The position numbers and the translations under genes are program-made. Positions 2,925 to 48,621 of a stretch of 64,000 nt of DNA are shown in pieces. This stretch comes from Octopus sinensis (taxonomy: Eukaryota): the NCBI RefSeq assembly GCF_006345805.1, contig NC_043003.1, positions 89,156,001-89,220,000 of the forward strand. The letters are read 5' to 3'. The notes under the pieces are model-generated. The model was given only the letters and a program-made list of their open reading frames with translations, did not search any database and was not told the DNA's origin. Numbering within the stretch: the first letter of the stretch is position 1; every line of letters begins with the position of its first letter.

Positions 2925-2966
<42 letters not shown>

Positions 2967-3537
2967 GGGGGTCTGTCTGTATCTATGTGTGTGTGTTTGG
3001 CTGTACATAGCGGATATAGTAGTATATGTATATGTTTACTAGGGTTTAACTGTAGATATGTGTGGAGATGTATGTGTAAATCCATGTATTTAATGCTGTG
3101 CATAATGAGGCATACTTGTATACACTCGAACATATTAGCTTATATATGTGTGTATGAGTACATGTTTATACACACACACATATACATATACTATAAACTA
3201 TAAGCTAGTAACTCTTGTGTAAACTGACCATTCAACATAACAATATCAAATTACAACTTCAATCAGTATTTCAGAGAGTGGTCAGTGGTCGAAATTAAGA
3301 ATTTATTTATTACCACTGCCATCCCATCAAAGCCAAAATCTTATTCTCAGCCCTTCAGTATCTTATCTCTTTATCTCTTACTCTACTTTATATTCTCAAT
3401 TCTTTTGTTTTTATCTTTTTTTTTGTTACTTTATTCTTATTTGGCTAATTCTTATTTATATGTGGTTCTAACTTTATTATCCTTATTTTTACTTTTTTAT
3501 TATTTTTGCTTTTATTACTCTTGTCTTTTGCTTCCAG

Positions 3538-6500
3538 GAATTACAACTGTGTTTCATGGTCTGCTACCACAACAGCTCCTTTATAGGATCCAGCTAGCTC
3601 TAGACATCATCAGGAAGAACCACGTCCGGTTTCGGCCCCTACTCCTCTACCGTTTTCGGAGGTTCCCTGGCCTCTTCGATGTATCATCAGTGAGTGTCAG
3701 CTGGTGACTGACTGACTTGTCAAAGTTTTTCCCTTTAAATACTTGCCGCTAGGCTCCAGCAGGCAGCCCCAGCAAGTTGTCACGTGACACTGTCTCAACT
3801 TTAACTGACCAATGAAGGCAGGTAGTCTTAGCCCACGCATTCTCTAAACGACCATCATTTGTCAGTCAGCGAAGCTGATTCAGTGTCAGCTTGTCTCACC
3901 TAGTGATGTTATTTCCCGCCGGCATGTTATGACTTTCAAGCCATTTTTGGTTTTCCCTCTTCAGCCATATATAGAAGCTGGCTTTTTCGACTGCCTCCTA
4001 TACTCTCCTTATTAGTTTTCGTAGCTCTGAGCTAGAAAAAAACAAATCTTCTTTTGAATAGCGTTGTCATTTTCCTTTCAATGAAACCTCTAGCCCCTAC
4101 TGTGGTAATACTTGACATTCCATCCCTGTTCTCTGCACTCTTCGATTAGTTTTTCGTACCTCTTCTCCTTTCATTCCTCTGCATTGCCAATGGCACTGTC
4201 AGTTCTAGTAAAATTCCTATTCTCCGTTCTCTGTTCCATAGGACTAAATCTGGTCTTTTTGTCGTTTTTATTAGTGGAAATATTACTTGTCTTTTCAAGT
4301 CTGTGGCCAGCTCCCAGTATCCCTTCCATCTTTCGTCTATCTCGTATACTTTACTTGTAGGCCTGGTTTTATAACCTTTACCCTCCTTGTGGAAGTATAC
4401 TTTCCTGAGCTTTTCTATCTTTGGTTACTCTCCCCTATTGTACCTCTTGATCTTCTCCTTGAGTGCTGCGCTTATGACGTTGAGGACTTGATTACGTCGC
4501 CACGTATACCTTTCTTGTGCTGATCTGCAGTTTGACAGAACATGTCTAACCGTCGCTTTCTCTCCGCATCTACACTCATTGGTTGTTTTTATGTTCCACC
4601 AGACTAAGTTCGCCGGTGAGGGTAGAACGTCGAAGGTAGATGTGATCAGGAAGGATGTTCTTGCTCGTTCCCAAGCCCAAAGTTCCTTCCATGATATTCT
4701 GCGGCTGATCATATATTCCTCCCATCTCAGGCACTGTCCCTGTTGACTATATTGCACCAAATGTACATTTCGCCTTTCTTCTTCCTCCTTTCTCACTTCG
4801 TATACCACTGCCTCTTTCATCTCTTTTATACTGCTCTTGCAAAATGGCCTGAAATTTTGCGACCCTAGGCCGGTTCTTGCTTCTTGTATTGCTCCGACTA
4901 TATCTGCGTGCCTTAGTTTTCTGATCACCCTGTTTACTGCCGCTTCCGCCTTCCATTTCCTCCCTGTTCGTACCTTTGGAGGGTTTTCCCGGATGCTCTG
5001 ATCTTTTGAATACCTTAGCATCATTACTGCCCTTGCCTTTCCTGCCTTATATTCTTTGGCGATTGATGTTATTGGTAGTTGCAGCACAGGTTTTCCATAT
5101 AGTGCAGTTGTATTCAGTGGTTTCAGCAGACCAAGCCATTTTCTGATAAACACACTGCATCTTTGTTCCATCCTTTCTACTCTACTTGAGGCTATTTCGT
5201 ACATTTGCAATGGCCACATTATTCTTGGGTACAGCCCAAATTGCAGTATCCAACATTTGAATTTTCCCGGCAGTGTTGTTCTGTCAATTGCCTTTAATCC
5301 TCGTTCTACTAACTCGTGTGTTTCTTTCCCTTGCTTCTTATCATTTAATAAATCTCTATACCATCTGCCGAGACTCTTTACTGGTTGTTCTTTCACTGTT
5401 GGTATGTCTTCACCTCCTATCCTGAATTTCACTTCTTCTTGCCTTCCTTTCACGAAAGCCACGCTTCGAAATTTTTTGGCTTTGAATTTCATCCTTGCCC
5501 ATCCTATCAGTTCGTCCAACCACTCTGCTGCTTCTCTACTTTCCGATAATACAGTTACGCCGTCCATAAAAGTCCTTAATGGTGTCTTTGTAACAGCTTT
5601 CTCACAGTTTGTAGGTCTAAGTAACATTTCCATGACTAACACGAATAAGATAACTGATATCGTGCATCCGGCTGCAATACCTATTTCAAGCCGTTGCCAC
5701 TCTGTTGTGAACTTTCCTGCTGTAAATCTCATCCTCAGGTTGTCGTAGTAGGACATGAGCATTCGTTGAACATCTTTTGGGATCCAAAAGAAGTCCATCG
5801 CAGTTTTTATTAGTGTGTGCAGAACAGATCCATAAGCATTGGCAAGATCTAGCCAAACAATATACAGGTTTTTCTTCAGTTGTTTTGCACAGGTGATGGC
5901 TTCCCAGATGGCAAATGCGTGTTCTATGCATCCAGGGATTTCGGGGATTCCTGCTTTTTGGATTGCTTCATTAACGTACACGTTATGCTGTACGAATCTT
6001 GTGATTCGTCTAGCAATAATTCCAAACAAGATTTTCCCGTCAGTATTTAATAATGAAATTGGTCTAAATTGACCTAGTGTTTTTGCATCTTTCTCTTTAG
6101 GTAGATAGATACCTTCAGTTATACACCATCGCTCCGCTACATCTTTCTTCTTCCACATTTCTCTTATCAGTGCAAACAGCTGCAAATGTAATTTCGGGCA
6201 ATATTTATATACCTTTTAGCTCACTCCAATGTTCCCTGGTGAACATTTTGCTCTTGCTTTTCTTATGAACTCATCCATTTCCTTCCGTTTGATGTCATTC
6301 AAATCAAATGGTACTCTTGGTTCAGGTGGTTTCTTCAGTCCGTGCATTTCTGGGAGTACTTTATTTCTGTCAGAGTCACTGTATGTCTCTTTCAGATGTT
6401 GTTCAAGCTCTTCTTTCATGCAATCTAATTTTCCACTTTTACTTTCAGTAAATAGATGTTTCGCATATTGATAGGGATTGTTCACAAAGCTACGATAGTT

Positions 6501-10055: not shown

Positions 10056-11170
10056 TATATATTTTAGTGTGTGTGTGTATTTGTGTTTGTGTGTGTGTGT
10101 GTGTGCGTGTGTGTGTGTGTGTGTCTATCCTCTCATATGTGGAGGCAAACAGGAGTTTATAGGGAAGCATAAGTTGGGGGGGGGTCAACTTCTGGTCTGG
10201 TCTGCATAAGCAGTGGTCTGCACAGGCATCAATGGTTAGGAAATTCCTACCTATCTTAGCAGTAGATGGGATAACACTAATGCCCCTGCAATTAGCAACA
10301 TTAACACTAGTAACAGTGGCAATGAGAATACTACACAACCTTCTTTTAATTTTCATACAGCTAGAGAGGATTTAAACTCACACTTGAATTAGACTCATCA
10401 ACCTACCTATACATTATCTAGTAAAAAATCTAAGGTTGTGAATTCTAATACAAATCTTTGAAGTACTGTTTTCCCAAGTCTTGGTCCTGGAATAAATACT
10501 ACCCAAGACAACCATTATCAATTAGGTCCACTTAGTCACTATAATCATAAGTCTGGTTTATCTCTCTGATAATATCTCTGATAAGCCTGGCTTATCCCCC
10601 TTTCCATCTCCATAGTAGAGTCACTAACACCCTGTTCCTACTTTGAGGATAAATGATCGCATCGAACAACATAGAATACTAATGGAGCATGAACCCACTG
10701 GTTGTTGGAGAAATTGTAAATGTTGGGTCTCCCAACTCTGTTAAATGGGTTTTGCTTGTGCTATAATATGGTATATAAATGTTAGGTCACAACACCATCT
10801 TCCCACCAGGCGAGTGTATACATAAGGGGATACGTTTGACTTTAAGTGACACTAACTTGTTCACCTAAGCTCCTTCCCAAGTTTAGAGCCTCTAAACTAG
10901 CTATATCCCTAACCACTTCCAAACACTGGCTCAAGTCCCAGGGTATACCTTATACCTTATCCTGGTCCATAGTTTGCAGTGGAACCCCATAGAATGCTAA
11001 CATTTGCATTTGTAAATTATGTTGCTGGGAATCACTCACAATATTATGCCAAAATTCTCTCATTTAATTTTCTCTTGCAGACAATAATTCTATAGTACTG
11101 TTGCTCATTATGTAAGTTCAGTAAAATTTCTCCTCATTTTAGTTAAAACCATTTTCTCATAGACTTTCAA

Positions 11171-11262
<92 letters not shown>

Positions 11263-11591
11263 TTCCTAATCTCTCAATGAGAGATATTCAGTAGCAGTAA
11301 TTTAAAGTAAAGGTTACTTGCCAGACTAATGTAGCAGTCCCGGTTGGGATGAATGCTACTGTTGTTTAGCCCCAGGAGACAAATTAGAGATAAAACCACT
11401 ATTATGCAACTCAAACAGTGATAAATATAAACCAAAACATAAATAACAGATAAAATATATTTTTATAAAACATATAACTACATCTCAAAAAGTATAAAAA
11501 TGAATAATCAATAACGGTGGTGCCCCAGCATGGCCGCGGCCTTCGGGCTAAAACATTTTTAAGGAGTTTAAGGATTTATATAATAAGTAAA

Positions 11592-11696
11592 AACACTACG
11601 TACGTTTCATGGCTACAATTAAATTCGAATTACAATTAAATTTAAATTTAATTGAAATGAATACAATTTAAAATTATAGTCAATCTTCAGGTTAAC
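11592..11696 (-). ncRNA. Degenerate type I hammerhead ribozyme
   Basis: The minus strand reads CTGAAGA-ttgactataatt...aattgtagccat-GAAAC-gtac-GTA. Long stem II, palindromic loop III; stem I pairs poorly. Confidence 0.5.
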
Positions 11697-13824
11697 AATA
11701 ATAGTTAAATAAATAAGCAAATAAAGTTAAACAATATTTATTTAAAAAATAAATAAAATAATAATTGTTCTTATAGAAGAAACTCCATTAATTAAATTTC
11801 AAACTTAAAATATTAGGATTAGTTTCCTACAACACATTTATTATAAATCCTTAAAATCCTTTAAAATGTTTTAGCCCGAAGGCCAATATTTAAGGTAAAA
11901 AAAGGTAGAGTAAATAGATAGAAATATGTATTAATATGTGAAGATATAATTTAGCTTAAAAAAAACATTAATAAATTATAGAATATCTTTAACCCAGTTA
12001 TACTCCAATATTTAATTAGCAAATTATTTAACAAAATAATCACTATTAATATTTTTAGATTTTTGTTCGCATATAATAATTATAAAATAATAAATACATA
12101 AAAATAAGTATCTAAATTATAATCAACAAATATAGTAATTAAAAATCTAAATTTTTTCTATCAATAAACGTATAAACATATAACCAAAAATAAATTAGTC
12201 CATTATTACTTACATAAATATTATAGATATCTATAGAAAATATTTATGAAATACAATTTAAAAATTGAAAAATTCAAATTAAAAATTTATAACCTACGTT
12301 TATAAAATACTTATTATTACTATTATCAAAAACATTTTTACGATCTATATTGCAATGTGACTAACTAACATCTTAGAATTTACGTTCAGATATAATAATT
12401 ATAAACTAATAATAATTAAATAAATGTACATATCTAAATTATCATTAACAAATAAAAAAAATTATAAATTCAAATTTAACAATCAATAGTTATATAGAAT
12501 ACAATGATATTTCTTAAATAAAAACGTTTACTTATCTCTCAAAAATCGTGTCATTAACTAACATTTCAAAACGGAAAACGTCTTATTAAGTGTTTATAAA
12601 AACTCGTGGAATTACGTTATTAAAAGAAATAGAACAAACAGATGGAAATATACATTTTATCAATGAAAACTACAAATATATTTTAGCTTTAATAGGTAAA
12701 GAGAATAAAATCTCTAAGAGAGAATAAAATCACTATACACTATATCTTTCACTATAAAACTAAAATTTTAAATTAAGTACGATAAATTATACTCAAAACT
12801 CTATAAATTAAAATAATTTATATAACTACTATTTATTGTATATTCTCTAATAATCTTATACAAATTAATTTATTTCATATATATAAATATGGTTATGTTA
12901 GAGCCAAATCTTATATTAAACAAAACAACTTTTAGACACATTCTATATTAACTCACTAATTCAATCAGTATCTATACTATAACTACTAATTAATAAATTT
13001 AAGTTGATTCAAAAACTATAATGTAATTAATATTCATTAATAAATAATATTAATTAATTAAATAAACACCTAAATAAATCTAATTCGAAATATATAATAT
13101 AAATACATTTTGATTAATATATAAAAAAAATTTATTACAATCTATAAGCTTAACTGTCAATTACAACAAATATATATTATATATTATAATAATATTCAAA
13201 ACAAATGCTAAAATAATAAATTAAACTTATTATATAAGTAAAGTAATTTATATTTAGATCAAATACTTTGCTCATTAATTAAATAAATAAAGTACATATT
13301 ATCATTATAAATAAATAGTACATAAAGAAAAAAATATTTTACTACATATTCAAAATTATTTATTTAATGTTACTAAAACTATTACCAAGAATATATATAT
13401 ATACTTAATACTATTAATTTTAGTAGACATATAATAAGCATAATAATAATAATATCAACCACAACAATAACAAAAAAAATTAATGAAATAACTATCTTTT
13501 AAACTATGTTCATTAAATAAATTATATATTTAGTAATTAAATAAACATCTAAATATAATCTAACTCTAAGTATTTAAAAAACCTTTACTAACTTGTATTG
13601 ACTTATATTCAAACCACCTACAGAAGTGCAATCACAACACTACTATATTAATTAATTAATAGTTTATTAATTTAGACTTATTAAATTATGTAATATACAA
13701 TATATAATCACATGCTAAATTATAGAATTAATAATAGTACAAAATATAACTACAAATTAGAGACAAAAATAGGGTTTAAATATAGTTGCTATTTATCTAA
13801 AAATTTATTATATAAGTAAATTCA

Positions 13825-14295
13825 TTTGTGTCTACATTTAATTTTACACTCGTCCAATGAATTAACTAATTTATTATGATTATTAAATATTTCTTTAAAT
13901 TCACTAGAACATAAGAAAACAAGAATTACTACCTATACTATATGATTTCGCCTTGCAAAATTATACTTAATTCGTTGGGATTTAAGTTCCCATATGCATT
14001 TGCTAAGCCCAGTAGAGTTCATAAGATTTCTATTCTTAAAGGAATGCATATGCTGAGCTACTCTTAATTTAATTTTAGAGGAAGTAGACCCTATATAGAT
14101 AGCATTTAAGTTATTATTATTCTTATTATTCTCATTAATTAAAGTAATGATACATTTATTATTAAATTTACAATTACTTTTATCTCTACATGTTCAATCT
14201 AAGAGTATGTTATCTTTATAATTATTGGTATTATTATAAAATTTCGTTTTATAAAAATTATTCAACTTTTTTATTCCTATTATTTATATTATTAA

Positions 14296-14329
<34 letters not shown>

Positions 14330-14330
14330 A
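13825..14330 (-). mobile_element. GIY-YIG endonuclease end of a decayed PLE (probably Hydra clade)
   Basis: My minus-strand translation: *TCRDKSNCKFNNKC...AIYIGSTSSKIKLRVAQHMHSFKNRNLMNSTGLSKCIWELK...LCSSE...KIKCRHK*. Confidence 0.8.
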
Positions 14331-14347
14331 ATATTAGTATTAATATT

Positions 14348-14379
<32 letters not shown>

Positions 14380-14555
14380 TATTATTATTTTTTTTTGTTT
14401 TTAATATTATTAAAATTATTATTATCATTTATTGAATTAAAATTAAAATTAAAATTAGTCTTATTTCTGTTTTTATTTTTATTTTTATTTTTATTTTTAT
14501 TTATATTGTTGTTGTTGTTGTTGTTATTATTATTATTATTGTTGTTGTTATTACC

Positions 14556-17500
14556 ACACCCTCTGCAAACACACACATTGTCAAAAACTTTTCCAAACTG
14601 CCCACTTTGTGCCATAAAAAGGAACAAAGATCCTCCTTCCGAAGCTGAAAGCACGTGCACCGTTCGAAAGGAGAAAGAAAACCAGGACGTCACTTTCGAC
14701 GTCATTAAAGATTTCCCTCCTCTGCCCTCCACCAATGCTATGGTACCGGAGAGAGAGGAAGGGAAAGCTATGACTAACATAGACACGAGCACGAAAAAAA
14801 AGTGAAGAAAATTCCAACGATTTTGCTTCTGCTGCGAAGCAGGTTTCGGATGAAATAAAAGTCACGATACAGGACATTAAAAAAGCAAAGGAGTTATTGA
14901 GGAAAGAAGGCAATAGCATTTTCCTCAATACTCCACAAGAAGTGATTGATGAAACAAATAAAAAAACAATCACCTACAAAATTTTCGACAAAAAATGTAA
15001 AAAACTAACAAACGCCACACCCCAACAATTGAAAATAGCTCTGAAGCCCATTTGGGACAAAAAGAGCTACGTAACCAAGGGGAAGCGTTTTGGAACCGTA
15101 GAGGTTCGTTTCCAAATGTAGGAGGAAGCAAGGGCGCATGCCATTTCGCCCTTGCAAACCAAAAATTTGTTACTCGTCCCAAACCACCTTGGGCGGAGAG
15201 TAACGAAAATAAAAATCAACCTCATCCCCCCCGAACCATATATCATGGCTGGTGGCAGCTGTCCTCTATGACATAGAGGACACTGCCACTATTCGAGATG
15301 TACGGAGAGTGAAGGAAAAGAACTGGTTAGGAATGGGAGTGCTGCTCCTGGTGCAGATTCAACAGGAAAATATTCATACCATCCCAGATTCCGTTAACTT
15401 GCCGGACGGCACCAGGCTACACGTTGCTGTGGAGAGGCGAAAGCCAAAATGTTACCTCTGCAGCAGCGAAAGCCACCTAAAAAGGGACTGCCCCATTTAC
15501 AAGAAAAGAATGGAGGCAAACGGTAAGAGGCAGCAGCAGCAGCAACAACAACAACAACAACAACAGAAACAACAACAGCAAGATACACCAAAGACTGCCA
15601 CACCACCAACACCATCACCACCACCACGACGAACGACACCACCTCCAACAACAACCACCAAACCAACACCAACTTCTGCACCAAGAAAAACAACAACAAA
15701 AAACAAGGAGAAACACCAACAGCGTCATCATCACCAATAGACACAGCAACACCACCGCTACTAGCAGAACCAACAAAAATCTTTTGCCCTGCTGATGAAG
15801 CGGACCCGACAGCCATCCCCCTTCCAGATCAGGACAGCTTGGATTGTGCGAGCACTGATGCCGAGAAAGAGGAATGGCACACAGTGCCTCCAAAAAAGAA
15901 AAGGAGGAAAAAACAAAAGGACACACAGGGGAAGCACGAACAAATAGTGCTTCCCAACATCAACAACAACAACAACAACACACACTCACAACAACAAACA
16001 ACAACAATACTTTCGACACCACTACTACCACTGCCACACACACCAACACCAACAGACACGATTACTGCAATAAACACAAAAAATGAAAAACTAGTTACAT
16101 ATCTAAAAGCCAAACAAGTACACAAATTGAAGATTTCATTATACCAACACACAACACACCACCAGCACACACTCTCACAATAAAAATCAATCAAAAAACA
16201 TATAGTGATATAAAACAAATATTCCCTAACGATGTCGGATCGCTAGGGAAAAGTTTCTCAAAGAAACTATATAAAAATATAATTGAAGCACCCGTGAAAA
16301 AGCACAAAGGAGCCACCCCCACCACCAACAACAGTAAGTAGAGCCTTTTTCTCCTTTTATATTTTTTCCCCACCTTTGAAACATGGCAAAACTTAGAATC
16401 GGTTGCTTGAATGTGAGAGGCCTCGGGTCACCTTGGAAACAGGGTCACCAGTTAAACAACCTGAGGTTTCATGATATGGATGTAGCAGCCATCACTGAAA
16501 CCAGGCTCTCCGACCCACAGGAACTCGCAGCCCTTTTCGGCGGATACAAGATATTTCTATCTCCGTGTCGGCCGGGAGCGGGGGTGGTGGTACTGCGGTG
16601 TTGTTTCGGAAGGGCCTGGACTTGAAAATAAGGACAGTCTTCCTGGATCCGGGAGGTAAGTTGGTGGTCCTCGACGTAGACGGTAGTGACGGCGGTGCTT
16701 TCAGACTGCTGGCTGCCTACGCTCCGACAGGAGCAGGGCAGTCAGATTATTTCAAACGTCTGGAAGTTTTCCTGGGAACGTCATGCACTCTAGTGCTAGT
16801 TGGGAATTGGAACGCTGTCTTAGACGAACATTTCGATCGAGTGGGCAGGGGAGCGTCTGATAGAAGAGAAGGGTGCAAGAGCCTCGCCAACCTATTCGGA
16901 CGCTTTCAGCTGTCCGACAGGTTTCGACTAGACAACCTGAATGTGCCAATGTGGACTTGGACCAATCGCATTGGGTCGTCTAGATCGTACTTAGAGGCCA
17001 GTGGATAAGGACAGCATAGGGTGTCCACAATTCCACATAGTCGACTAGACGGACCACAAATTCGTGATCTGTACGGTCGACTTAGATAGGCTACATAGAC
17101 AGGGACCCGGATACTAGAAGCTGAACGCGTCGTTAACGGCGTGCAAAGCTTACAGAGACTGGATTAGTTTACTAGTTAAGCAGGCGCTCACGGGGGCAAT
17201 CATCAACAACAACTGGTGGTTTACCCTCAAGAAAGCAATTAGAGTAGAGTCGATTAGGTTTAGTAAGACTCTAGCTATTGAACGTAGGAAGAGAGAGCGG
17301 GATTTAGTTAAGAAACTAGACGAGGCTCTTGAGACTGGCATCGCGACCAACGTGTTGGCGGCAAGGTTGGCTCTCGACCAACACTTTGACGCCAAATACG
17401 AAGGCTGCGTTGTCAGAGCTAAGGCACGTTTGCTAAACGGGGAGGGGACTAGAGCCGCTCGATGGGCCCGCGTGGCGGAGGCGAAGCGAGGCAACAAAGC

Positions 17501-19680
17501 AACCATTCGGTCTTTGGTGGACCAGAACAGGCGCGAGGTTACCGAACCGAAGCAGATGTGTACGGTGTTTCAGCAGCACTTTGCTCAACTGTTTGGGACG
17601 TGCAGTGGAACGCACACTGGTGCAGACTTCGGTGTGTACCTGGACGGCCTACCGCAACACTCGGACAGCACCGTGCCAACCAGGTCGATACACGACAACC
17701 TCCATCTCATGCGCTACATCATAGAGAGGGTGGGTAACGACGCTGGCACGGGTGGGGCTTTGATCAACTTAGATCAGAGTAAAGCCTTCTATAGGGTCGA
17801 CCATCGGTACCTGGCAGCTGTTCTCAAGGCAGCCGGCTTCGGTCCAGTTTTCCGTGGGTGGATCGCTGCTTTATACAGCAACATCTGCTTGGTGATATGG
17901 GTGAACGGTCACCTTTCGGAACCGTTTGACATCTCGCGTTCGGTCCGCCAAGGATGCCCTCCCTCTTGTACATATTGACTCTCGAGCCATTACTGCGCAA
18001 GTTGGAGGCTTTGAGGGGTATCGTGCGCGATCTAGGAGGCGGGAACAGCGTTTCTGCCTATGCCGACGACGTCACCGTGATGGCACATTAGCCTGATTGG
18101 TGAGACACTAAACGAGTACGAAGTGGTGACAGGAGCAAAGATTAATGCGGAAAAGCCTGTGGGCTTGCAACTGGGCACCTGGAGAGGCAAGCCCATGCCG
18201 TCCAACAGCGTCGTAGGGCGCTGGACAGACGGACCCGTTAAACTGCTCGGCATCTGGTTCGGTCCGGACCTCCAGGTGAATAAAAACTGGGAAGAAGTGA
18301 CGAGCAGGGTGGCACGTCTCACCCAGAAATGAGCCGAGAGGAAGCTGTCTCTGAAAGGTCGAGCGGAGGTGGCGAATGCATACATCGCATCCGTCATCTA
18401 TTACCGCTTGACCATCGTCCCTTGTCCCAACCGCTGGTTGGCCAAGCTGGTACGCCTGCTCTTCGACTTTTTGTGGAAGGGTCAGGTGCCACTGGTCAGG
18501 CGATCCATCTGCTGTCAACGACCGCTGAACGGAGGCCTTGGCATGCCGTGGTTACTGATGCACAGACATGCGCTCAGGCTGCGACATCTCAAGCGTTTCC
18601 TAGATGGTGATCAGGTGTGGTCGTCTTTTGTCAGACGCGACTTTCCGCAGCTCGTCTCTTTGACAGAGCTGCAGACCTGGATCAAACGTAGACCGAGAAA
18701 GGGCGCTTGGCACCTCGAGTGCCGTCAAGCTCTCTCCGCCCTCCGCCAGGCGGGCAATGCGATCGGTTTTAGTTCCACTCTAGCGTTCTATAGAGGGTTA
18801 GTGGAGGAAAAATGCGACGACGTTCTCGGGAAAACTCTAGGCGTTGATGATAACGAACTGAGCGGTCTGTTCGGAAGGACTTTCGGGCTGGAGCCAATGG
18901 ATAATTTCCAGAGGTCGCTCGCCTGGCAGTGCTACTGAGGGGCTCTGCCTGTTCGGGATAAACTCTACTGGCACGGAAGTGCCGTCAGCCGGGCATGACC
19001 GAGGTGTTGCCAGGACGACGAAACCGTTCTGCACGCACTTGTCCAATGCCCGAGTATTGCTGAACTATGGGTTTATGTCGAACAGCTACTGTCGCGTATA
19101 GGACGGATCCGGCTATCAGCCAAATCCATAGTGAAGATTGCCCCGCCGACCTCCTTTAACAAGGAGGGCGAGGCCGTTTTCCTGTGCCTAGTGGCTGTGG
19201 CGAAAGAGATTGTATGGTGGACCCGTTTCAAAGGGCTAAAGTCAGACACTTTCCTCTTTGGTCAAGGCCTCATCAACTTTTTCAAGTTTCACTTGAAAAG
19301 GAAGATGAGGTTAGAGAGGAGAGTGCTGTCCGATAGCAAGTTTTCTGAAAGGTGGGTGAATTGTGCGAGAATGGCCAGTATAAATGGACCAATTCTCAGG
19401 TTTTGCCTGTAATTGAAAAAGGTTTTATAAAAGGAGAAAGGGGCTCTCTACTCTCGTTTTGACCAGGCTCCCGTTGGCTTTTATGGGGTTTTTTCCACCA
19501 GGAACCTTTCGAAGCGCCTCCCCCTATTGGGAGTTTTTCATTGTTACAATCTTTCATTGTTAAACAGTTTTTACTCGAATTTTTTCAAAAACGGACAAAA
19601 CCCTTTGTAACCTTTCGTCTTGTTTTGTCCCTTTATGTTTACTAATCATGTGTGTCAGCCCTTGTGGCCAATAAAAAGAA
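14556..19680 (+). mobile_element. Tx1-like (L1 superfamily) retrotransposon, two ORFs, decayed, with an internal deletion
   Basis: ORF1 pieces include the knuckle CYLCSSESHLKRDC and Q/T/P-rich tracts. ORF2 starts at 16383 with APE motifs (GCLNVRGL, ITETRL, AYAP, GNWN), then RT motifs (LDQSKAF, VRQGCP, AYADDV, LLGIWFG) and a C-terminal CxxC..H..C. In-frame deletion near 17658. The 3' UTR ends gtggccaataaaaagaa. Confidence 0.9.
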
Positions 19681-34560: not shown

Positions 34561-35149
34561 TTGGCTGGGCAGAAGAGTGTAGTGGTGCTAAGTACAGGTT
34601 GGAGGCAATGGTCTAGTAAGTATTTAAGAGCTGATAGGCTATCGTTGTTGAGGATGATAGTATAATGTTGATTGTGAAAAGGCGTAAAACTCTACTGTCT
34701 CTCATTAATTTCTCTTGTGTCACTTTTATCTGAAAAACTCTGCTCAAAATGTTTGTGTGTGTGCGTGTGTGATTTAGTTATAAGGATTCATTAGAATCAA
34801 GGTGCATCAACACCAGAAATGGCTAACTACAATAACATAGAGCTCACAGTGAAGTAAACAAGATTGACTATATTGAATGTTAGTGGGATACTGTAGATAT
34901 GCAAGTACAAAATTCAGTTTAAACCACCCATTCAACTCTGGGGTTGGTCCTTGGTATGACGCAGGTATAAAAAAATGAACACAAACAGCATTTAAAATTT
35001 ATGACAATAGGTTCAATTAACTGAACATGAATTATATGCTTAACATATAGCTATAGATCTAAGGAAATTTCATTTCCTCAAAATACTAGGTATAGAACCA
35101 GTGTTTCTTTGAATGTAGCCATCCCTTTGTGAGGTTTAATATATCCTCT

Positions 35150-38100
35150 TGTCAGGTCAGGTCTGTTGTATGCAGCATCGGATCCTACTACTGGTAAACT
35201 GTAAACCAGTACAACCTGTGTCAGTGGGGTAGAAAGGGCTCCTTAGCCGTAGTGAAGGCAACCTATCTAGGGAGATAACCTTACAATAAATCACTCAGCC
35301 CGTAGCTTAGAAGTACTGGGTTGACGTCCAGCGGGAACAGCTTTGTTTCATGGAGGAGGAAAGATCTTCTTTAGTACTTGGTTGTACAATGCTTTCCAAT
35401 GTGTGTAGTAGTGGTGCGCGCACACATTATTAGCCATTTGAAAAGACTATGGAATTTACAATTAACTGCACCAGGGTTCCTCTTCCCCAGGGAACCAGAC
35501 CTAATGGTATACCTGCGGATGTAGGTCCAGCCCCTGCTTTGCCGGGTCCTGTCTCTGATCATGTTGCACCTCCAAGGGCATCCATTGACGGTGATGCCCT
35601 CAATCTTAACAGACGGGTATCACCTGATGGAGAAGAGTCAGCCCCCAACCAAACAACACCAAACAAACACCTCATCAGCTGTAAAAATCATACGATACTC
35701 AGCACCCTCAATGCCCGCACCCTCGCCTCTCTTCGCCGTCTAGAAGAACTTGGTGCAAATGCAGAATCACATGGCATTGATATAATAGCTGTCCAAGAAC
35801 ACCGATTTTACCACCCTGACAACATCCTCAAATACCATCAAGTCGGTTCTTATCAACTTGTAACCTCCTCAGCATCAAAGAATACTGTTAATTCAACAGT
35901 TGGAGGTATCGGATTTCTACTTTCATCAAAGGCTAGTGATACTCTCTTGAGTATAGAGTCAATCTCACCTAGAATTATGGTGCTTGAGATAGATGGAAAC
36001 CCAAAAACAACATTGGTATGTGTGTATAGCCCACATAATTCGTCTGTGGCAGACGAAATTGAAAATTTCTATACAACCCTTCGTTCAACCATTGAGCAAG
36101 TACCTCTCCATAATTTTCTGGTTATAGCTGGTGATCTGAATGCTAGACTAGGACCCGATGAGACCAAGTTTACTTTCAACTCTAAAACCAATCGGAACGG
36201 AGAAATGCTCAAAGACTTCTTGGAGGAATTTAATCTCTACACCTCCAACAATTCTTTTATGAAACCAAAAGGTCAACTTTGGACATTTGAGTCCCCACTT
36301 GGTGATAGGGCACAAATTGACTACCTCATCTTTCGAAAGAAATGGCGCAATAGTGTTAAGGACTCGAGATCCTACTCATCCTTTAGTTCTGTCGGCTCTG
36401 ACCACAGAATTGTATCAGCTACCGTTAAGCTTAGTCTTCGCTCATCCAAAAAAACTAAGCCTCACCCGATCAAAATGATCGACTGGGAGGAAGTCTTATC
36501 TAACCCCGATATGTCCAAACAATTTACTATTGAGGTCTATAACAAATTTCAATCTCTGTCTACTTCTGAAATAGATGCTGAGAACATTGAGGAAGTATAC
36601 AGCAGCCTCATCAAATCAACAGAGGAAGTTGCACTGGCTGCTCTTCCCAAAAGGAAGAGTAGGGGCCAGAGCAAACCTTCTAATTCCCCAAATGTCATCG
36701 AAGCCAGAAACCATCTAAAGTCTATATCACTAGCTTACCACCGTTCTCCATCCCAGTCACTGAAGATCCAACTCATAGCTGCCAGGAAGAATCTTGATGA
36801 GGCTTACTTGAACGCCGAGGTCGAATTTATCAATGGCAAAATTAGTAAACTATCGAAAGAGCACATTAGTAAAAAACACCATCTCGCCTGGAAATCCATC
36901 AAAGACCTATCAGGCAAAAATTCTGGGTCATCAATTAGAATTAAAGGGGGATCAGCTAAGAAGTGTTTAGAAAATTGGTCAACCCATTTTAAAAACCTCC
37001 TTGGGAAGAATGCCAAAATCCCTGATAACCCCACTCTCCCAAGTGTGCCTATATCAGACACGCTGGACATCAACACCTCCCCTTTTACCATATTTGAACT
37101 AACAGCAGCCACCAAGCAACTAAAAGCCTCGAAAGCATTTGGTCCCGACAACATTCCGGCTGTGATTTGGAAGGATGATAGATTTCACACACTTTTGCTT
37201 AACCTCTGCAACCACACACTTTCCACCTTTGTCGCTCCAAAGATTTGGCACCAGTCTCAAATCATTCCAATACCCAAAAAAGGCGATTTGTCCCTCGTCA
37301 CCAACTACAGGGGCATATCTCTAATGTCAATTGCTGCAAAACTGTACAACAAACTGATCCTAAATCGTCTTGTCCTTTTTGTTGAACCTTTGCTCCGAAA
37401 GAACCAAAATGGATTCAGACATGGGCGCTCAACGCTGAGCCAGATACTATGCCTGCGCAGACTTATTGAAGAATCAAAAGCATTTAATCGCGATCTTGCA
37501 ATGGTATTTGTAGACTTTTCTAAAGCGTTCGATTCTGTAGATAGGTGCAAGATGTTTGAAATCCTTAAGCTCTATGGGATACCAGACAAAATTATTTCTG
37601 CCATCAAGGTCCTCTACACAGATACGTCTTCAACCATCTTAACCCCTGATGGAGAAACATCATCTTTCTCGATCGAGGCCGGAATACTGCAGGGAGACAC
37701 ACTCGCCCCATTTCTTTTCATCATTGTTGTTGATTATGTGCTACGTATGTCAGTTGATACCATCTCTGGCAAGGGCTTTGAAATAAAACCAAGAAGAAGT
37801 TCCAGACACCCAGCTGAGTACTTGACAGACACTGACTTTGCTGACGACATCGCTCTTATCAGTGATTCTCTCTCCAATGCCCAGTCTCTTTTACAATCTC
37901 TTGAACAAGCCTCAAATTGTGTAGGTCTTTACCTTAATGAGACCAAAACTGAATACATAAACAAGTGCCTGTCCAACAGTGATTGTATCATCCACACTCT
38001 CAACAGTGCACCTTTAAATATGGTTTCTGATTATAAATATCTTGGGTCATACATATCATCATCTGGAAAAGACTTTCTAACTAGAAAGGGTATGGCCTGG

Positions 38101-38601
38101 TCAGCCTGTAATGACATGCATAAGATCTGGTCATCAAATCTAAGTAGAGACTTCAAACTTGAAATATTCAAAGCCACAGTCGAACCAATCCTACTATATG
38201 GCTCAGAAACCTGGACGTTATCAAAGAAGCTTGAGAGGCGGTTGGATGGAACCTACACTCGCCTCCTTATGAGAGCTCAAAATCTCTCGTGGAGGCGCCA
38301 TCCAACTAAAATGCAAATATATGGGAAATTACCACCTGTGTCATCTCTTGTGAAGGGTAGGAGAGTCCAGTTTGCTGGACATTGTTGTAGAGCTGAAAAA
38401 GAAGTAATTTCTACTCTTCTCCTCTGGAAGCCATCTACTCGCAACACCAGAGGGCGCACACTCTCCTACCCTGATGTAATCTCCAGGGATACAGGCATCC
38501 AGCAACAGGACCTCCGTAATGCTATGATGGACCGTGAAGTCTGGCGCAACATGGTAAATTCCATTGTCTCGACCACGGTCGAACAATGATGAATGATGAT
38601 A
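35150..38601 (+). mobile_element. Full-length RTE-clade LINE (family A) with TSD
   Basis: Single ORF, about 300-nt 5' UTR with ggcaacctatctagg, short (TGA)n-like tail. 9-bp TSD atatcctct at 35141-35149 and 38602-38610. Confidence 0.92.
35449..38589 (+). CDS. Intact APE endonuclease plus reverse transcriptase ORF, 1046 aa
   Basis: STLNART, VQEHR, VYSP, GDLNARLG, IDY, SDH; NYRGISL, QNGFR, FVDFSKAFDSV, GILQGDTLAP, FADD, YKYLGS. No stops or frameshifts. Confidence 0.95.
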   Translation: MEFTINCTRVPLPQGTRPNGIPADVGPAPALPGPVSDHVAPPRASIDGDALNLNRRVSPDGEESAPNQTTPNKHLISCKNHTILSTLNARTLASLRRLEELGANAESHGIDIIAVQEHRFYHPDNILKYHQVGSYQLVTSSASKNTVNSTVGGIGFLLSSKASDTLLSIESISPRIMVLEIDGNPKTTLVCVYSPHNSSVADEIENFYTTLRSTIEQVPLHNFLVIAGDLNARLGPDETKFTFNSKTNRNGEMLKDFLEEFNLYTSNNSFMKPKGQLWTFESPLGDRAQIDYLIFRKKWRNSVKDSRSYSSFSSVGSDHRIVSATVKLSLRSSKKTKPHPIKMIDWEEVLSNPDMSKQFTIEVYNKFQSLSTSEIDAENIEEVYSSLIKSTEEVALAALPKRKSRGQSKPSNSPNVIEARNHLKSISLAYHRSPSQSLKIQLIAARKNLDEAYLNAEVEFINGKISKLSKEHISKKHHLAWKSIKDLSGKNSGSSIRIKGGSAKKCLENWSTHFKNLLGKNAKIPDNPTLPSVPISDTLDINTSPFTIFELTAATKQLKASKAFGPDNIPAVIWKDDRFHTLLLNLCNHTLSTFVAPKIWHQSQIIPIPKKGDLSLVTNYRGISLMSIAAKLYNKLILNRLVLFVEPLLRKNQNGFRHGRSTLSQILCLRRLIEESKAFNRDLAMVFVDFSKAFDSVDRCKMFEILKLYGIPDKIISAIKVLYTDTSSTILTPDGETSSFSIEAGILQGDTLAPFLFIIVVDYVLRMSVDTISGKGFEIKPRRSSRHPAEYLTDTDFADDIALISDSLSNAQSLLQSLEQASNCVGLYLNETKTEYINKCLSNSDCIIHTLNSAPLNMVSDYKYLGSYISSSGKDFLTRKGMAWSACNDMHKIWSSNLSRDFKLEIFKATVEPILLYGSETWTLSKKLERRLDGTYTRLLMRAQNLSWRRHPTKMQIYGKLPPVSSLVKGRRVQFAGHCCRAEKEVISTLLLWKPSTRNTRGRTLSYPDVISRDTGIQQQDLRNAMMDREVWRNMVNSIVSTTVEQ

Positions 38602-38614
38602 ATATCCTCTAAGT

Positions 38615-41841: not shown

Positions 41842-43113
41842 TTGGGTTGAGAAATAATTCTCAAGCGTTTTTTCAAATCTATTTTTAAAAAAAAGACTAC
41901 AACAAATTAATCAATAATGTACAGTCTGTTGTTGTTTATGATTTCCTCCCATTGTCCAACAAGTCTTTTGATGCCTCAGCAATAGAAATCTCCCGCTCTT
42001 GACTTCAAAGAATTTGTCCAACCAAGTTTTCAATTCCACGTTATTATTGAACAATACACCACACAAAGTGTTTGAAAGCAGTTGAAAGAGATGAAAATCT
42101 GATGGCGCCAAGTCTAAAGGAGTATGGTGGATGAGACAGCACATCCCATTGTGGCTTTGGGCATATTGGTAATGTGAGAAAATCGCAGCTTATTTCATAT
42201 TGGTGGTGTGAGGATGGGCATTGTCATGTTGCAGAAGAATGCCATTTCACTTAGCTGGTCTTTTTTGCTGAATTGCTTCATTGAGTTGGTGCAGTTGTTG
42301 AATGTAGAGCTCTGCAATGAGTGCTTGGTTGCACTCAAGCAGTTTGTAATGAATTGTGCCTTCCCAGTCTGACCATACACACAACATGGTCTTTTGAGGA
42401 TGAAGGTCTTGTTTTGCTCACGGAGTAGCTTGTTTGTCAAGGCTGAGCCATTCTTTTCGCTGCTTCATATTGACGCAAAGGCACCAGTTTTCATTGCTAG
42501 TGACAATGTGGTAAAGAAAACACTGAGCAATGTCAATCAAGCAAACTGCCGGCGATTGTGGAGTGTTGGTTTTAGTTGTTTTCATCTAAAGTGTGTGGCA
42601 CCCAAGTGCCATGTTTCTGAACCTTGCCCATTGAGTGAAGGTGATTCACCAAAGGTTTTCGATCACAATTCACCTGCTCTACCAATTCTCTGGTCGTTTG
42701 ACATGGATTTTCATGAAGAAGTTGATTCAATCATTCTTCATTGAACCCAATTGGTTGACTAGTGTGTGATCCATTCTTGAGGTCAAAATTCCCAATTTTG
42801 AAGCACGGAAACCAATGGTGGCTGGTACTTTGAGGCATTGCTCCTTTTCCATACACAGCACAAATCTCACGAGCAGCTTCAGTGGCCTTAACACTTAGAT
42901 TAAATGCAAAAAGCAAATGGTGTTGAAAATACTCAGTTTTGTCCACTTGACATTCCATTTTATTGATCTGGAAATACACAAAAATCAAAACACTTTCTTG
43001 TAGAGCAAAAAATTCCCTTTTAAATAACATGAAACATTTTGCCAATGAGTTTTATTTCTGTGTGCCCTTTTAAATTTGAAAAAAAAATGCTCTTGAATTA
43101 TTCCTCAATCCAG
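41842..43113 (-). mobile_element. Full-length but decayed mariner element
   Basis: MECQVDKTEYFQHHLLFAF..EAAREICAVYG..GNFDLK; LDLAPSDFHLF. Diverged TIRs ttgggttgagaaataattc and gaattattcctcaatccag. Confidence 0.8.
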
Positions 43114-43821: not shown

Positions 43822-43996
<175 letters not shown>

Positions 43997-44844
43997 TATA
44001 TATATAATGTACGCATATATAATGCAGTACGTTCTCAAGGTTATCGTCCCAATCACAGATATAGTGGACGAATCCGAAGACGTATACATATATTAACTTG
44101 CTTAGCAAACTTCATTTATCAATAAAAATAAATATATGTTCCTATACTACAGTTTTTCTAAAGCTCCGAGTATCAATCAATTAATCAATTCATCATAATT
44201 CAAATATCAATACATTACATAAGCAATCAGAAACATTATGTAAATAGGGTGATCCATCGCTTGCCTGGTTGAAAGCTAAGTTTTCAGTCGAAATGAACTG
44301 GAATTTCTTCCGTCCAACAGCCGTTAATCTAAATTTATTCCAGCTGTTCAGATTCTAGTTACAATGCTGTCATTTCTCTTTGATTTTGACATCAACACAC
44401 ACCAGATGGTCTAATTAACAGACGTTTATCTAGTAATCCTAGTGCGGTCTTTGTAGATATAGCGGTACTGATGTGTAGCAGGAACTATCGTCAATGATGA
44501 AGATAGTGTCAGAATTGCTACCACGACGCAGAGCTTTGCTGCTTTCCATATATTTAAAATGAAAATCACTAAACCAAAATCACAACAAACAAAAAAAATC
44601 CCCCCCCATCTTCTGAAAATATCGATTTGACGAAACGAAACAGATAATTAAAACAATCGATTTATCCGCATATGTGGAATGAATGCATTATTTGCTTTAG
44701 CAACATAGTAATTGAAAGATTGCAGAGTAAATGAATGGAACGAGTCAGGTGTTGTGGGACGTAATCAAAGGGGAGACAATCATTTTGCTTCCGAGAATGT
44801 CACTAGGGGTGCTCAAAGATCGCTGCTTTAGCATTAACACCGCC

Positions 44845-44874
44845 ATGATTGCTGTGCTTGCAGTGGGTGTGTAA
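44845..44874 (+). promoter_or_regulatory. Candidate uORF (MIAVLAVGV*) 35 nt upstream of the GRAF start
   Basis: accgccATG context, TAA stop before the main ATG. Confidence 0.45.
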
Positions 44875-44909
44875 AGATTGCCGTTCATTGGAGACGTTCG
44901 AAATTAATC

Positions 44910-47537
44910 ATGGGGCTGCGACCGCTGGAATTCGCGGAATGTTTAACAGATAGTCCGTATTTTCGAGAGAATTTACACGAGCATGAAAAAGAATTGGAAA
45001 GAACAAGCAAATCTATCAAAAGCTTGATAGCTTGCGGAAAGGAACTCATTAACGCTGCGAGAAATCTGTCGAAAGCCCAGAAAGCTTTTTCACAAAATCT
45101 GCAGGAATTTCGATTTGAAACAATAGGAAATCAACAAACTGATGATGAAGTAGTAATTGCAGCTTCTCTCAAGGAGTTTGGAGATTGTTTCTTAGCAATT
45201 GAGGAAGTATTTGAAAGAATGCTAGATAAAGCAAAAGATATGTTTTTGGCCCCTTTGGAAAGGTTCCGTAAAGAAAACATTGGAAAAGCTAAAGAAGAAA
45301 AGAAACAGTTTGAAAAACAAACATCTAAATTTTGTGCTTCACAAGAGCGCTATCTCAACTTGAAACCTAAAACTAACGACACTACATTCCAAGAGGCTGA
45401 TGCAGCTCTTGTTTTGGAAGGTAAGCATTTTTACCAAGCATCCATGAAATATGTTCTTTTATTACAAGAAGTGCAAGAGAAAAAAAAATTTGATTTTGTC
45501 GAAATTATTCTTACATTTATATCTAATTGGTTAACTGTTTACCATCAGGGCCATGAAGTGGCTAGAGAATTTAAAACTAACATGAGTGACCTGCAGCTAC
45601 GATTGCAGAACACGCGAGAGAACTTTAATAGTACTAGGGATGAAGCGGAACTTTTGATGAATAAAATGTTAGAGACCAGAGGTTCTCGTGGTGAGTTTAC
45701 TCTGGCCCCTAAGGATTGTAGTCGACAGGGTTATCTCTTTCTCATGGAGAAAAAAGCTCTCGGTACTAACTGGACGAAATGCTACTGTCGCTATTTCAAG
45801 GAACACAAAACTTTCTCTATGATTCCCTATAATCAAATGGTTGGCAAACTCAGTCAACCAGAAACAGGAACTCTTATGTCTTGTATAAGGAGAGCATCTG
45901 ATTCCATTGATAAACGATTTTGTTTTGATATAACTATTTCTGACAAGCCAACTGTAATCTTTACATTCCAAGCATTGTCCGAAGATGATCGACACCTATG
46001 GCTCGATGCTATGGATGGAAAAGAACCTACCTATCAAACTCCCAACAAAACGTCTGAAGAGACCTATATTTTGGATAACATTGGGTTTCAGTTTATCAAT
46101 AAATGTATCGGTTCTATAGAGAGAAAAGGCCTGACGGACCAGGGTCTCTATAGATTGGTTGGTGTCAACTCGAAAGTAAACCGACTTGTTAACATGGGAC
46201 TTGATCGTCGAAAAGTTGATAAGCTTTGCTTAGATGACGCTGGAACCTGGGAAGTGAAAACAATCACCAGCTCCATTAAACATTATCTTAGATCTTTACC
46301 GGAACCTTTGATGACCTTCCGTTTGCACGAGAATTTTATCACTGCTGCCAAACGTGAGTCTAAACTTTTGCGATTTCATGATATACATAGTCTTGTACAT
46401 AAGCTGCCTCAAAAGAACTTCAAAATGTTAGATTTGCTATGTAGTCACCTAAAAAGAGTTTCTGATAAGAGTGATATCAACCTTATGACTGTTGCCAACC
46501 TCGGCGTGTGTTTCGGGCCAACTCTAATGCGGCCCGAAGAAGAGACTGTGGCCGCTATAATGGATATTAAATTTTGCAATATCGTCATTGAAATTTTAAT
46601 AGGAAACTATGAAGAGATTTTCAAACAGACACCTGTAGATATTGGACTTTTAGATGATCTGGAAGATTGTAAACTGTCACCTGCTGAGAGTACAACTACC
46701 ACAAAGAAAAGCTTGGAAAATCAAGCTTTGCCTTCAGGTGCCTCTAGTCATGGAATACCTCCATCTCCTGTTCCTGCGACACACTATAGCAATGTATCAT
46801 CAACTGTTAATTCAAGTCCTGGTTTGCCTAAAAGTGGACCCTTTTCTGAACATGGCTCTCCAAAATATGCAGCTCCTGTTGTGATGCGATCGCATAATTT
46901 ACCAAAAACTAGACAACAGGGTATTGGACACGGTCATCTGAGTCAAGTTGGTGCTGCTATTGGTGGAGTTCATATGACGGGTCACGATCCCAGTCGTGGT
47001 AGCAGTACCAGCGGGAGTTCAGAATCCTTGAATTCTTACAAATCCCCTTCGACAAACCCTTCGCCTCAATTGGATTCTAATCGCAGAGGCCCTATTATGC
47101 CTGCAATGTTTACAAGTGCCCCAGCATCTGCTTTCTCTGGATCCAAGATTCAAACTCTTGGCGATATTGGGACGTTTGGCAGTATTAAAAGGCGTAACGC
47201 CACTGAGTCGTATGCTGGTGGTGGAGGAGGAGGCAGCGGCGGCTTGAGTGTTGGGGGAGGTGCTTTACGTTCGTCGATGCACAGTGGCACGACTAGCAGC
47301 AACGTTGGGCTCCTTCCAGATTCATCTTCTGCCATGTCTAAGTCTATGACTGAACAGCGTTTACGTACTGTTCGAACTCTTTACAACTGCCAGGCAGAAA
47401 ATGATTCTGAGTTGTCTTTTCATGCCAACCAATTCATCTATCAGGTGAAACCATCGCAGGAAGCTTGTTGGTTAGAAGGTACATTGGATGGTGTGACAGG
47501 GCTTATACCTGAGAATTATGTAGAGTATGTTGATTAG
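44910..47537 (+). CDS. Graf: GRAF/ARHGAP26-oligophrenin family Rho GTPase-activating protein, single exon, 875 aa
   Basis: BAR (MGLRPLEFAECLTDSPYFRENL), PH (RQGYLFLMEKKALGTNW), RhoGAP (GLYRLVG arginine finger, KHYLRSLPEPL, NLMTVANLGVCFGPTL), low-complexity linker, SH3 (TLYNCQAENDSELSF..WLEGTLDGVTGLIPENYVE). Confidence 0.95.
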   Translation: MGLRPLEFAECLTDSPYFRENLHEHEKELERTSKSIKSLIACGKELINAARNLSKAQKAFSQNLQEFRFETIGNQQTDDEVVIAASLKEFGDCFLAIEEVFERMLDKAKDMFLAPLERFRKENIGKAKEEKKQFEKQTSKFCASQERYLNLKPKTNDTTFQEADAALVLEGKHFYQASMKYVLLLQEVQEKKKFDFVEIILTFISNWLTVYHQGHEVAREFKTNMSDLQLRLQNTRENFNSTRDEAELLMNKMLETRGSRGEFTLAPKDCSRQGYLFLMEKKALGTNWTKCYCRYFKEHKTFSMIPYNQMVGKLSQPETGTLMSCIRRASDSIDKRFCFDITISDKPTVIFTFQALSEDDRHLWLDAMDGKEPTYQTPNKTSEETYILDNIGFQFINKCIGSIERKGLTDQGLYRLVGVNSKVNRLVNMGLDRRKVDKLCLDDAGTWEVKTITSSIKHYLRSLPEPLMTFRLHENFITAAKRESKLLRFHDIHSLVHKLPQKNFKMLDLLCSHLKRVSDKSDINLMTVANLGVCFGPTLMRPEEETVAAIMDIKFCNIVIEILIGNYEEIFKQTPVDIGLLDDLEDCKLSPAESTTTTKKSLENQALPSGASSHGIPPSPVPATHYSNVSSTVNSSPGLPKSGPFSEHGSPKYAAPVVMRSHNLPKTRQQGIGHGHLSQVGAAIGGVHMTGHDPSRGSSTSGSSESLNSYKSPSTNPSPQLDSNRRGPIMPAMFTSAPASAFSGSKIQTLGDIGTFGSIKRRNATESYAGGGGGGSGGLSVGGGALRSSMHSGTTSSNVGLLPDSSSAMSKSMTEQRLRTVRTLYNCQAENDSELSFHANQFIYQVKPSQEACWLEGTLDGVTGLIPENYVEYVD

Positions 47538-47763
47538 TTCTGTTTGGCTTATCGTTGACAGGCTGACTGGCATTCTCTCTCATTTTTTAAAATCTTGTTC
47601 ATATAAAATGTTCTCAGTTTCAGATTTTTATGAAAGGTAGAAGGAATGTTAACACCATTCACTTTTTTTTTTATCTATTATCGTCAGCAATGTTTTAAAA
47701 ATAGCCTTGAAACAAAATTCAGACAATCTTACTGCAAAGTGATATTTTGCTTAGTATGCATGT

Positions 47764-47809
<46 letters not shown>

Positions 47810-48621
47810 AAACATATATATGTGGGTGGGTATGCTTTTAAATCACGAATTGCATTCATAAATTAACGGGGTGTATTACTCTGTAAATGGTGATATAGAA
47901 GAAATATCGAGGGATGAAAAAAACTGAAAAGCTTTGCCGTTATTATAGTTAAATTATTTTTCTTCCTTCTACTGCCTTGTTTTCTACAAGTGGTGGAATG
48001 TAGTTAAAATGCCATGTCACCCTCCCCTGTGTAGTAGCCAAGGGCAGATAATTTCCCGCACTTTCAATATATTTCCTTACTTCCGGTTAAAAATGTTTTT
48101 TCTTTCCCCACCCACATTTAGCAAGAAAAGTAACTTTTTAGCAATTTTTTAAAGTAATTCAGTCAGTTATGTCAACTTTTATTGAGAATTTTAGATTCTT
48201 GAAATATTGCTTATAGGGAACAGCAACATATTTCAGCAAATAAATTATACTACAAAGTCTATGAATGCAAACCTATTCGAATGCAACAAAAAAAAACTTC
48301 TATGTCCGTATTTAAAGATTAGCAACAAACTTTTTATTTTTATTTATTACTTTCATATGTTCTCAATATTTTCTGCATTTATGCATGCATAAATTATGAC
48401 TTAGAGGGAGGTCATGAAATATATCTCTTGTGTACGCCTGAATATGTCGAAGTCCAACTCATTATAATTTAATCTATAAATATACCTCTCAAGTAATTAA
48501 TATTAAAAATGGAGAGTTACCTGGAATACATTAATTTTTTTTTTTTTTTTTGCTGTTTTCGAACAATTATTTTCGTTCATTGACTCCATATAATTATAAC
48601 TGCTGTTTATGGAAAACAAAT

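Follow-up and report, generated by a model that had tools for sequence, protein, structure and literature searches.

We report that the octopus orthologue of Graf/ARHGAP26, at positions 44910-47537 of a 64,000-nucleotide window of Octopus sinensis DNA (contig NC_043003.1; the window is the whole stretch that was analysed, and positions are counted from its first letter), is a single uninterrupted coding exon, and that this structure is shared by octopods and cuttlefish. Graf most probably reached this state through an ancient retrogene replacement (an "orphaned retrogene"), in which a processed copy took the place of the ancestral gene of about 24 exons before octopus, argonaut and cuttlefish split. 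A first-pass annotation, made from the letters of the window, had read the gene as an mRNA-derived copy or a case of complete intron loss. The parts of that reading which stand are that the gene is intact, has no coding introns, is maintained by selection and is old; the part which does not is that it is an additional copy, and intron loss is now the principal rival explanation.

The open reading frame (ORF) starts with ATG and encodes 875 amino acids and a stop codon in 2628 bp, with zero internal stops. Its BAR, PH, RhoGAP and SH3 domains (Table 1) all exceed the gathering scores that serve as the curated cut-offs of Pfam (BAR_3, PH, RhoGAP and SH3 families), and the ORF listing and Pfam together confirm the four-domain, uninterrupted reading frame described in the first-pass annotation. 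The best solved relative of the protein is the GTPase-activating domain of chicken GRAF (1f7c; E 4.5e-75), with the catalytic motifs kept. The arginine finger, which had also been called intact, is R415 in the motif GLYRLVG (codon AGA, 46152-46154), and it aligns to QGLYRIVG of the chicken structure. The SH3 domain matches the SH3 structures of oligophrenin-1-like and ARHGAP10 proteins. The locus is a full-architecture member of the GRAF subfamily, and the BAR-PH-RhoGAP-SH3 arrangement is common to the coleoid gene, to vertebrate GRAF1/ARHGAP26, ARHGAP10, ARHGAP42 and OPHN1, and to Drosophila Graf. In characterised members, the BAR-PH module binds and bends PI(4,5)P2-rich membranes, the RhoGAP domain with its arginine finger accelerates GTP hydrolysis on RhoA and Cdc42, and the SH3 domain docks proline-rich partners such as FAK and dynamin. 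Because the full architecture is present, the predicted function of the coleoid protein is most likely the conserved GRAF role, in which the shut-off of Rho GTPases is coupled to membrane remodelling and clathrin-independent endocytosis.

The same uninterrupted gene is found in genomic DNA of Octopus bimaculoides (a 2628-bp range for 875 amino acids), Argonauta hians (2601 bp for 866 amino acids) and the cuttlefish Acanthosepion pharaonis (2673 bp for 890 amino acids). Since the gene is equally uninterrupted in all three, the intronless state predates the octopus-cuttlefish split, which bears out the earlier view of an old event. The first-pass annotation had expected Graf to be multi-exon elsewhere, and this holds for the gastropod Haliotis rubra, where tblastn resolves at least 24 separate coding blocks over 98.7 kb, and for the bivalve Solemya velum, where the gene spans 126.9 kb. 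It had also named equally single-exon orthologues across molluscs as the sign of an ancestral condition; such orthologues occur within the coleoids, but not in the gastropod or the bivalve. The single-exon gene is thus derived with respect to other molluscs and ancestral for the clade of octopus and cuttlefish. Across about 20 of the Haliotis exon junctions, the octopus protein can be aligned without a gap, which points to precise intron removal. Graf genes of vertebrates, arthropods and other molluscs are multi-exon, with many splice isoforms in the databases (up to X26), whereas the coleoid gene has one coding exon and for that reason cannot give rise to exon-skipping protein isoforms. In A. 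hians, Graf is present on two contigs (BAAFZT010000078.1 and BAAFZT010000004.1) that show 11 synonymous differences and flanks that are 97-98.5% collinear; a duplication is less likely here than a pair of uncollapsed haplotigs.

The octopus protein shares 98% of its residues with O. bimaculoides XP_014787913.1 (named "rho GTPase-activating protein 26"), 89% with an Argonauta hians protein and 74% with a cluster to which Acanthosepion (Sepia) pharaonis ARHGAP26 belongs. The next-best matches are other molluscs at about 50% identity; for the orthologues of Haliotis rubra and Solemya velum, identity is about 53% along the whole protein and 63-65% in the BAR-PH region. In neighbour-joining trees, the coleoid sequences form one clade within Mollusca, at the position expected for a molluscan orthologue, and by this sequence comparison the coleoid gene branches as the single protostome-type Graf orthologue. 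Nautilus Graf was not found: no match fell into the gap between coleoids (74%) and other molluscs (roughly 53%), and the unnamed sequences included none that was sister to the coleoids. The distances of coleoid Graf to annelid, hemichordate and insect outgroups (0.59-0.66, vs. 0.51-0.66 for other molluscs) are within the molluscan range, and an accelerated or relaxed rate on the coleoid branch was rejected on these grounds. The ratio of nonsynonymous to synonymous divergence (dN/dS; Nei-Gojobori method) was 0.16 for the window gene compared with O. bimaculoides and 0.059 for its comparison with Argonauta; decapodiform sequences compared with one another gave 0.05-0.12, including a value of 0.063. 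The octopus-cuttlefish comparison shows saturation at synonymous sites (pS of about 0.8) and a pN of 0.15. Coleoid Graf is under strong purifying selection, as the first-pass annotation had supposed in speaking of retention by selection. Constraint of this kind, joined to an ordinary rate, is the behaviour that would be predicted of a sole and fully functional orthologue.

The neighbourhood of Graf differs between the coleoids and the two other molluscs. In Solemya and Haliotis, a gene of the NOA36/ZNF330 family lies directly upstream on the opposite strand and ends 2.3 kb and 4.6 kb, respectively, from the start of Graf (in the Haliotis locus contig, NOA36 occupies 1-5369 on the minus strand and Graf 10001-108731 on the plus strand). 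This head-to-head arrangement is the ancestral neighbourhood of Graf, at least for gastropods and bivalves. In the prawn Macrobrachium nipponense, ZNF330 and Graf are each reported on a contig of 53,539,879 bp, and human ZNF330 and ARHGAP10 both lie on 4q31; NOA36 and Graf look like an old gene pair, possibly with a bidirectional promoter. We searched the coleoid loci with 120 diverse NOA36 proteins and with the Haliotis NOA36 exon peptides; as a positive control, all 120 proteins matched the Haliotis flank, with E values down to 3e-25. NOA36 was not found in the 64-kb window, which covers 45 kb upstream and 16.5 kb downstream of Graf, or in the 10 kb on either side of Graf at four cephalopod loci (O. 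bimaculoides, the two Argonauta contigs and Acanthosepion); the best E value over all of these was 0.02. A cephalopod NOA36 was likewise absent from the protein-search matches, among targets of up to about 1.75 times the query length. Since NOA36 was not found in these flanks, coleoid Graf appears not to be at its ancestral position within the range examined.

These observations would most probably be explained by the following sequence of events. A fully spliced transcript of the ancestral gene, with its roughly 24 exons over about 100 kb, would have been reverse-transcribed, presumably by the machinery of a long interspersed nuclear element (LINE), and the resulting complementary DNA (cDNA) would have been inserted at a new locus, apart from NOA36/ZNF330. 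The relocated copy would there have gained a CpG-rich promoter and a leader with a conserved upstream ORF, after which it could have assumed the function of the multi-exon parent, and the parent would have been lost.

Several points weigh against a retrogene replacement. Neither a poly(A) remnant nor a target-site duplication was found in the Graf flanks, as the first-pass annotation had already remarked: A-runs within 1.4 kb of the stop codon do not exceed 9 nt, and none is conserved, whereas a young LINE nearby still has a clean duplication of 9 bp. These missing marks carry little weight, since hundreds of millions of years would be expected to erode them. Sequence conserved with Argonauta and cuttlefish ends at the coding sequence and leader, which makes the boundary of an ancient insertion untraceable. 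The missing NOA36 could reflect large-scale rearrangement in the coleoid ancestor, the flanks compared in Argonauta, cuttlefish and O. bimaculoides being 10 kb long. The absence of a parent, described below, was established in protein databases and transcript-like contigs, and a decayed or unannotated parent may exist.

The strongest alternative is that all coding introns were lost in place, by recombination (gene conversion) of a full-length cDNA with the ancestral locus, and that NOA36 was afterwards split off in the coleoid ancestor, either by rearrangement or by heavy insertion of transposons. The precise removal of every intron fits this route as well as any other that involves reverse transcriptase, no parent copy was found, and the ordinary evolutionary rate is what would be expected of a gene that kept its regulatory setting. 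The coleoid ancestor also underwent many translocations or fusions (PMC9023564). However, E. scolopes keeps 275 ancient microsyntenies, about as many as a scallop (216; PMC9023564). The position of NOA36 also speaks against loss in place: in the gastropod and the bivalve it is 2-5 kb from Graf, but it is missing from the 45 kb that precede Graf in octopus and from the 10 kb examined in Argonauta, whose genome is compact. Relocation is a direct prediction of retroposition, whereas loss in place needs an extra breakpoint exactly between genes that lie 2-5 kb apart. Moreover, cDNA-mediated loss in animals generally removes a few adjacent introns with a 3' bias, and not at least 23 introns over about 100 kb. 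We therefore regard loss in place as possible but distinctly less likely than retrogene replacement.

A second alternative is that coleoid Graf is an ordinary duplicate retrogene and that a spliced parent persists, unannotated, fragmented or poorly expressed. Among matches listed at 824 bits or more, we found no second cephalopod Graf protein, while gastropod, bivalve, chiton, annelid and arthropod orthologues were present. Any parent that branched off later than the split of cephalopods and gastropods would be expected to reach at least the Haliotis score (927 bits), so its absence from this range counts against its existence. The protein search returned targets of up to about 1.75 times the query length (at most 212 amino acids for a 121-amino-acid query and 657 for a 375-amino-acid query). 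Short queries therefore miss full-length relatives, down to the full-length protein of the source species itself, and the BAR-PH half alone was used to sample fragment-class proteins. This sample contained no cephalopod entry and no match above 63% identity, and in a neighbour-joining tree its unnamed Graf fragments grouped with arthropods, annelids or bivalves (none with coleoids). The single-exon gene was recovered with its complete coding sequence from dozens of public cephalopod sequencing runs, further decapodiforms among them (Logan contigs, from RNA or DNA libraries), and none of these runs yielded a parent-type sequence. The contigs carry no excess of A-to-G mismatches as a mark of RNA, their mismatch spectra being symmetric or empty.

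Across protein databases and transcript-like contigs, the single-exon gene is thus apparently the only Graf/ARHGAP26-type gene of coleoids. The first-pass annotation had implied an octopus-specific copy beside a spliced parent; instead, Octopus, Argonauta and cuttlefish share this single-exon gene, with no other Graf orthologue found in any of them, and the search for a spliced parent that it proposed would probably find nothing in octopus or squid. A persisting parent could still be hidden by the very large introns of cephalopod genes, which are often badly modelled, and the search covered predicted proteins and transcript-like contigs. Given the consistent outcome in both protein classes and in the sequencing runs, and the rate of the single-exon gene, which is that of a sole orthologue, we consider a surviving parent improbable. 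An artefact, whether cDNA contamination of the assembly or a chance ORF, has nothing beyond its general possibility to commend it and can practically be dismissed, since the structure is repeated in four independent assemblies, the domain E values are as low as 4e-71, and the window is collinear with the O. bimaculoides locus over about 24 kb, which rules out cDNA contamination.

The region upstream of the coding exon has features of a promoter and leader. The ratio of observed to expected CpG is 1.08 at 44030-45060, compared with 0.50 for the whole window (median 0.45, 95th percentile 1.05), in agreement with the CpG-richer 5' end noted earlier. As the GC content of this interval is only 0.37, it represents CpG non-depletion and not a classic CpG island. 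The 909 bp that precede the start codon have as their sole match the orthologous segment of O. bimaculoides and are collinear with octopus contig L014. Both this collinearity and the high conservation with O. bimaculoides begin just after a (TA)n microsatellite (Table 1). We infer that the 909-bp segment is the promoter and leader of Graf, with a transcription start predicted at 44001-44840; a repeat-derived promoter was considered and rejected, because the upstream kilobase is unique sequence.

The leader contains an upstream ORF of 9 codons. We compared eight coleoid leaders, namely those of the window, O. bimaculoides (L001), the two A. hians contigs (L002 and L003), cuttlefish genomic DNA (L009) and contigs L005, L012 and L014. 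The start context CGCCATGA and the terminal block GTGGGTGTGTAA, which follows 10-22 nt after it, are invariant in all eight (window positions 44841-44874). In decapodiforms the upstream ORF has 12 codons and ends in WVGV before the stop, and in Argonauta the first upstream ATG is in a different frame and a second ATG restores an ending of PVGV. Nucleotide similarity between octopus and cuttlefish starts at 44863, and no leader similarity was found upstream of Haliotis exon 1. Conservation at a depth where synonymous sites are saturated argues for a function of this element, which could be translational control or possibly that of a core-promoter element.

Downstream of the stop codon, the flank contains a (TA)n run at 47767-47802 and an AATAAA motif at 48239, and the poly(A) site is predicted near 48260. 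A block of 76 nt at 48040-48115, about 500 nt past the stop, is 76% identical to the Argonauta BAAFZT010000078.1 locus (L002, 13429-13496), and the remaining flank cannot be aligned; the block may be a regulatory element of the 3' untranslated region (UTR). The (TA)n ends of the long Logan contigs L012, L013 and L015 were rejected as transcript ends, being assembly breaks and not poly(A) sites. A candidate intron in the cuttlefish 5'UTR was also rejected: Logan contig L004 maps to the genomic contig L009 in two blocks 1.86 kb apart, with no GT/AG boundaries, a GCCAT microhomology and support from one contig only, and the junction is probably a chimera or template switch. Positions 1-35 of L004 map to 8030-8064 of L009, and the first base of the long contig L012 is only 21 nt upstream of this place.

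Table 1. Features of the Graf gene and its flanks, with positions in the window.
Feature	Position	Strand	Basis
(TA)n microsatellite, upstream edge of conserved gene block	43825-43992		Sequence, repeat runs
Unique CpG-undepleted segment, inferred promoter and 5'UTR	44001-44909	+	Observed/expected CpG about 1.0-1.1, no repeat copies
Upstream ORF in leader, 9 codons, MIAVLAVGV and stop	44845-44874	+	Leader comparison, eight coleoid sequences
Single coding exon, Graf/ARHGAP26 orthologue	44910-47537	+	ORF listing, Pfam, O. bimaculoides identity
BAR domain, amino acids 6-244	44925-45641	+	Pfam BAR_3, E 4e-71
PH domain, amino acids 272-368	45723-46013	+	Pfam PH, E 1.1e-6, exceeds gathering score
RhoGAP domain, amino acids 395-543	46092-46538	+	Pfam RhoGAP, E 1.2e-38; alignment with 1f7c
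SH3 domain, C-terminal, amino acids 821-872	47370-47525	+	Pfam SH3_9 and SH3_2, E 1e-8
Probable 3'UTR	47538-48260	+	Block conserved with Argonauta, AATAAA

Octopus Graf is already annotated publicly and retrogene replacement is an already known phenomenon, of which Graf is a new example. The closest precedent is amphioxus SYCP1, a multi-exon gene that now consists of one coding exon of about 3.2 kb and whose parent is gone (Garstang and Ferrier, 2018; PMC5803294). For the class, PMC5803294 cites the names "orphaned retrogenes" (Ciomborowska et al., 2013) and "retrogene replacement" (Krasnov et al., 2005). Like Graf, SYCP1 is multi-exon in most animals and a functional single coding exon of about 3 kb in one lineage, with no parent and with the same structure in relatives. 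In the SYCP1 case, both the move to a site beside the ParaHox cluster and the borrowing of a bidirectional promoter were shown, whereas the relocation of Graf is deduced from the missing neighbour: the genes of Haliotis and Solemya, with at least 24 coding exons over 99-127 kb, are paired with NOA36, and the coleoid gene, uninterrupted over 2.6 kb, has no NOA36 nearby. The Graf event is also the older of the two, being common to octopods and decapodiforms. Our literature search found nothing on the structure of cephalopod Graf/ARHGAP26 genes or on retrogene replacements in cephalopods.

As a conserved regulator, Graf/ARHGAP26 acts on Rho signalling and clathrin-independent endocytosis; in other animals the gene is large and heavily spliced. 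If replacement holds for all coleoids, the gene would be a clean and very old case of a processed copy that took over an essential function, and could mark the coleoid (or cephalopod) stem as a rare genomic change. It would further be a natural experiment in which a gene, once relocated, had to rebuild its regulation, here with a new promoter and a conserved upstream ORF, and an example of a lineage that manages without splice isoforms of the Graf protein. The practical weight of a single-exon Graf is modest. More speculatively, and with rather little probability, the replacement could be one of a burst of such events at the base of the coleoids, coinciding with LINE expansion and genome reorganisation. 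On this view, the new leader with its upstream ORF would have brought Graf under a translational control not found in its ancestor, and by going to one exon the gene would have traded splice isoforms for other kinds of diversification.

No other host genes were recognised in the 64-kb window. The surroundings are rich in LINE sequences, as had been described, with one intact LINE ORF and several fragments that encode reverse transcriptase or endonuclease. A GC-rich block at 15000-19000 (GC 0.46-0.56) contains such fragments at 16565-17008 and 17352-17978. A mariner/Mos1 fragment (HTH_48; 42731-43045, minus strand) lies 1.9 kb upstream of Graf, and a Tc3 helix-turn-helix sequence is also present in the window. 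An AT-rich stretch at 11000-14800 (GC 0.17-0.27) includes (AT)45 at 11171-11260 and, at 14278-14553, a degenerate array of (TAT)n; the rest is low-complexity sequence. The intact LINE ORF (35449-38589) encodes an endonuclease and reverse transcriptase of 1046 amino acids. It belongs to an element of 3.45 kb at 35150-38601 with an (ATGA)-like tail, which is flanked by a perfect 9-bp duplication, ATATCCTCT, at 35141-35149 and 38602-38610. As this LINE is absent from the orthologous site of O. bimaculoides (empty site at about 2131-2139 of L001), it is a young, lineage-specific insertion, and it may still be active.

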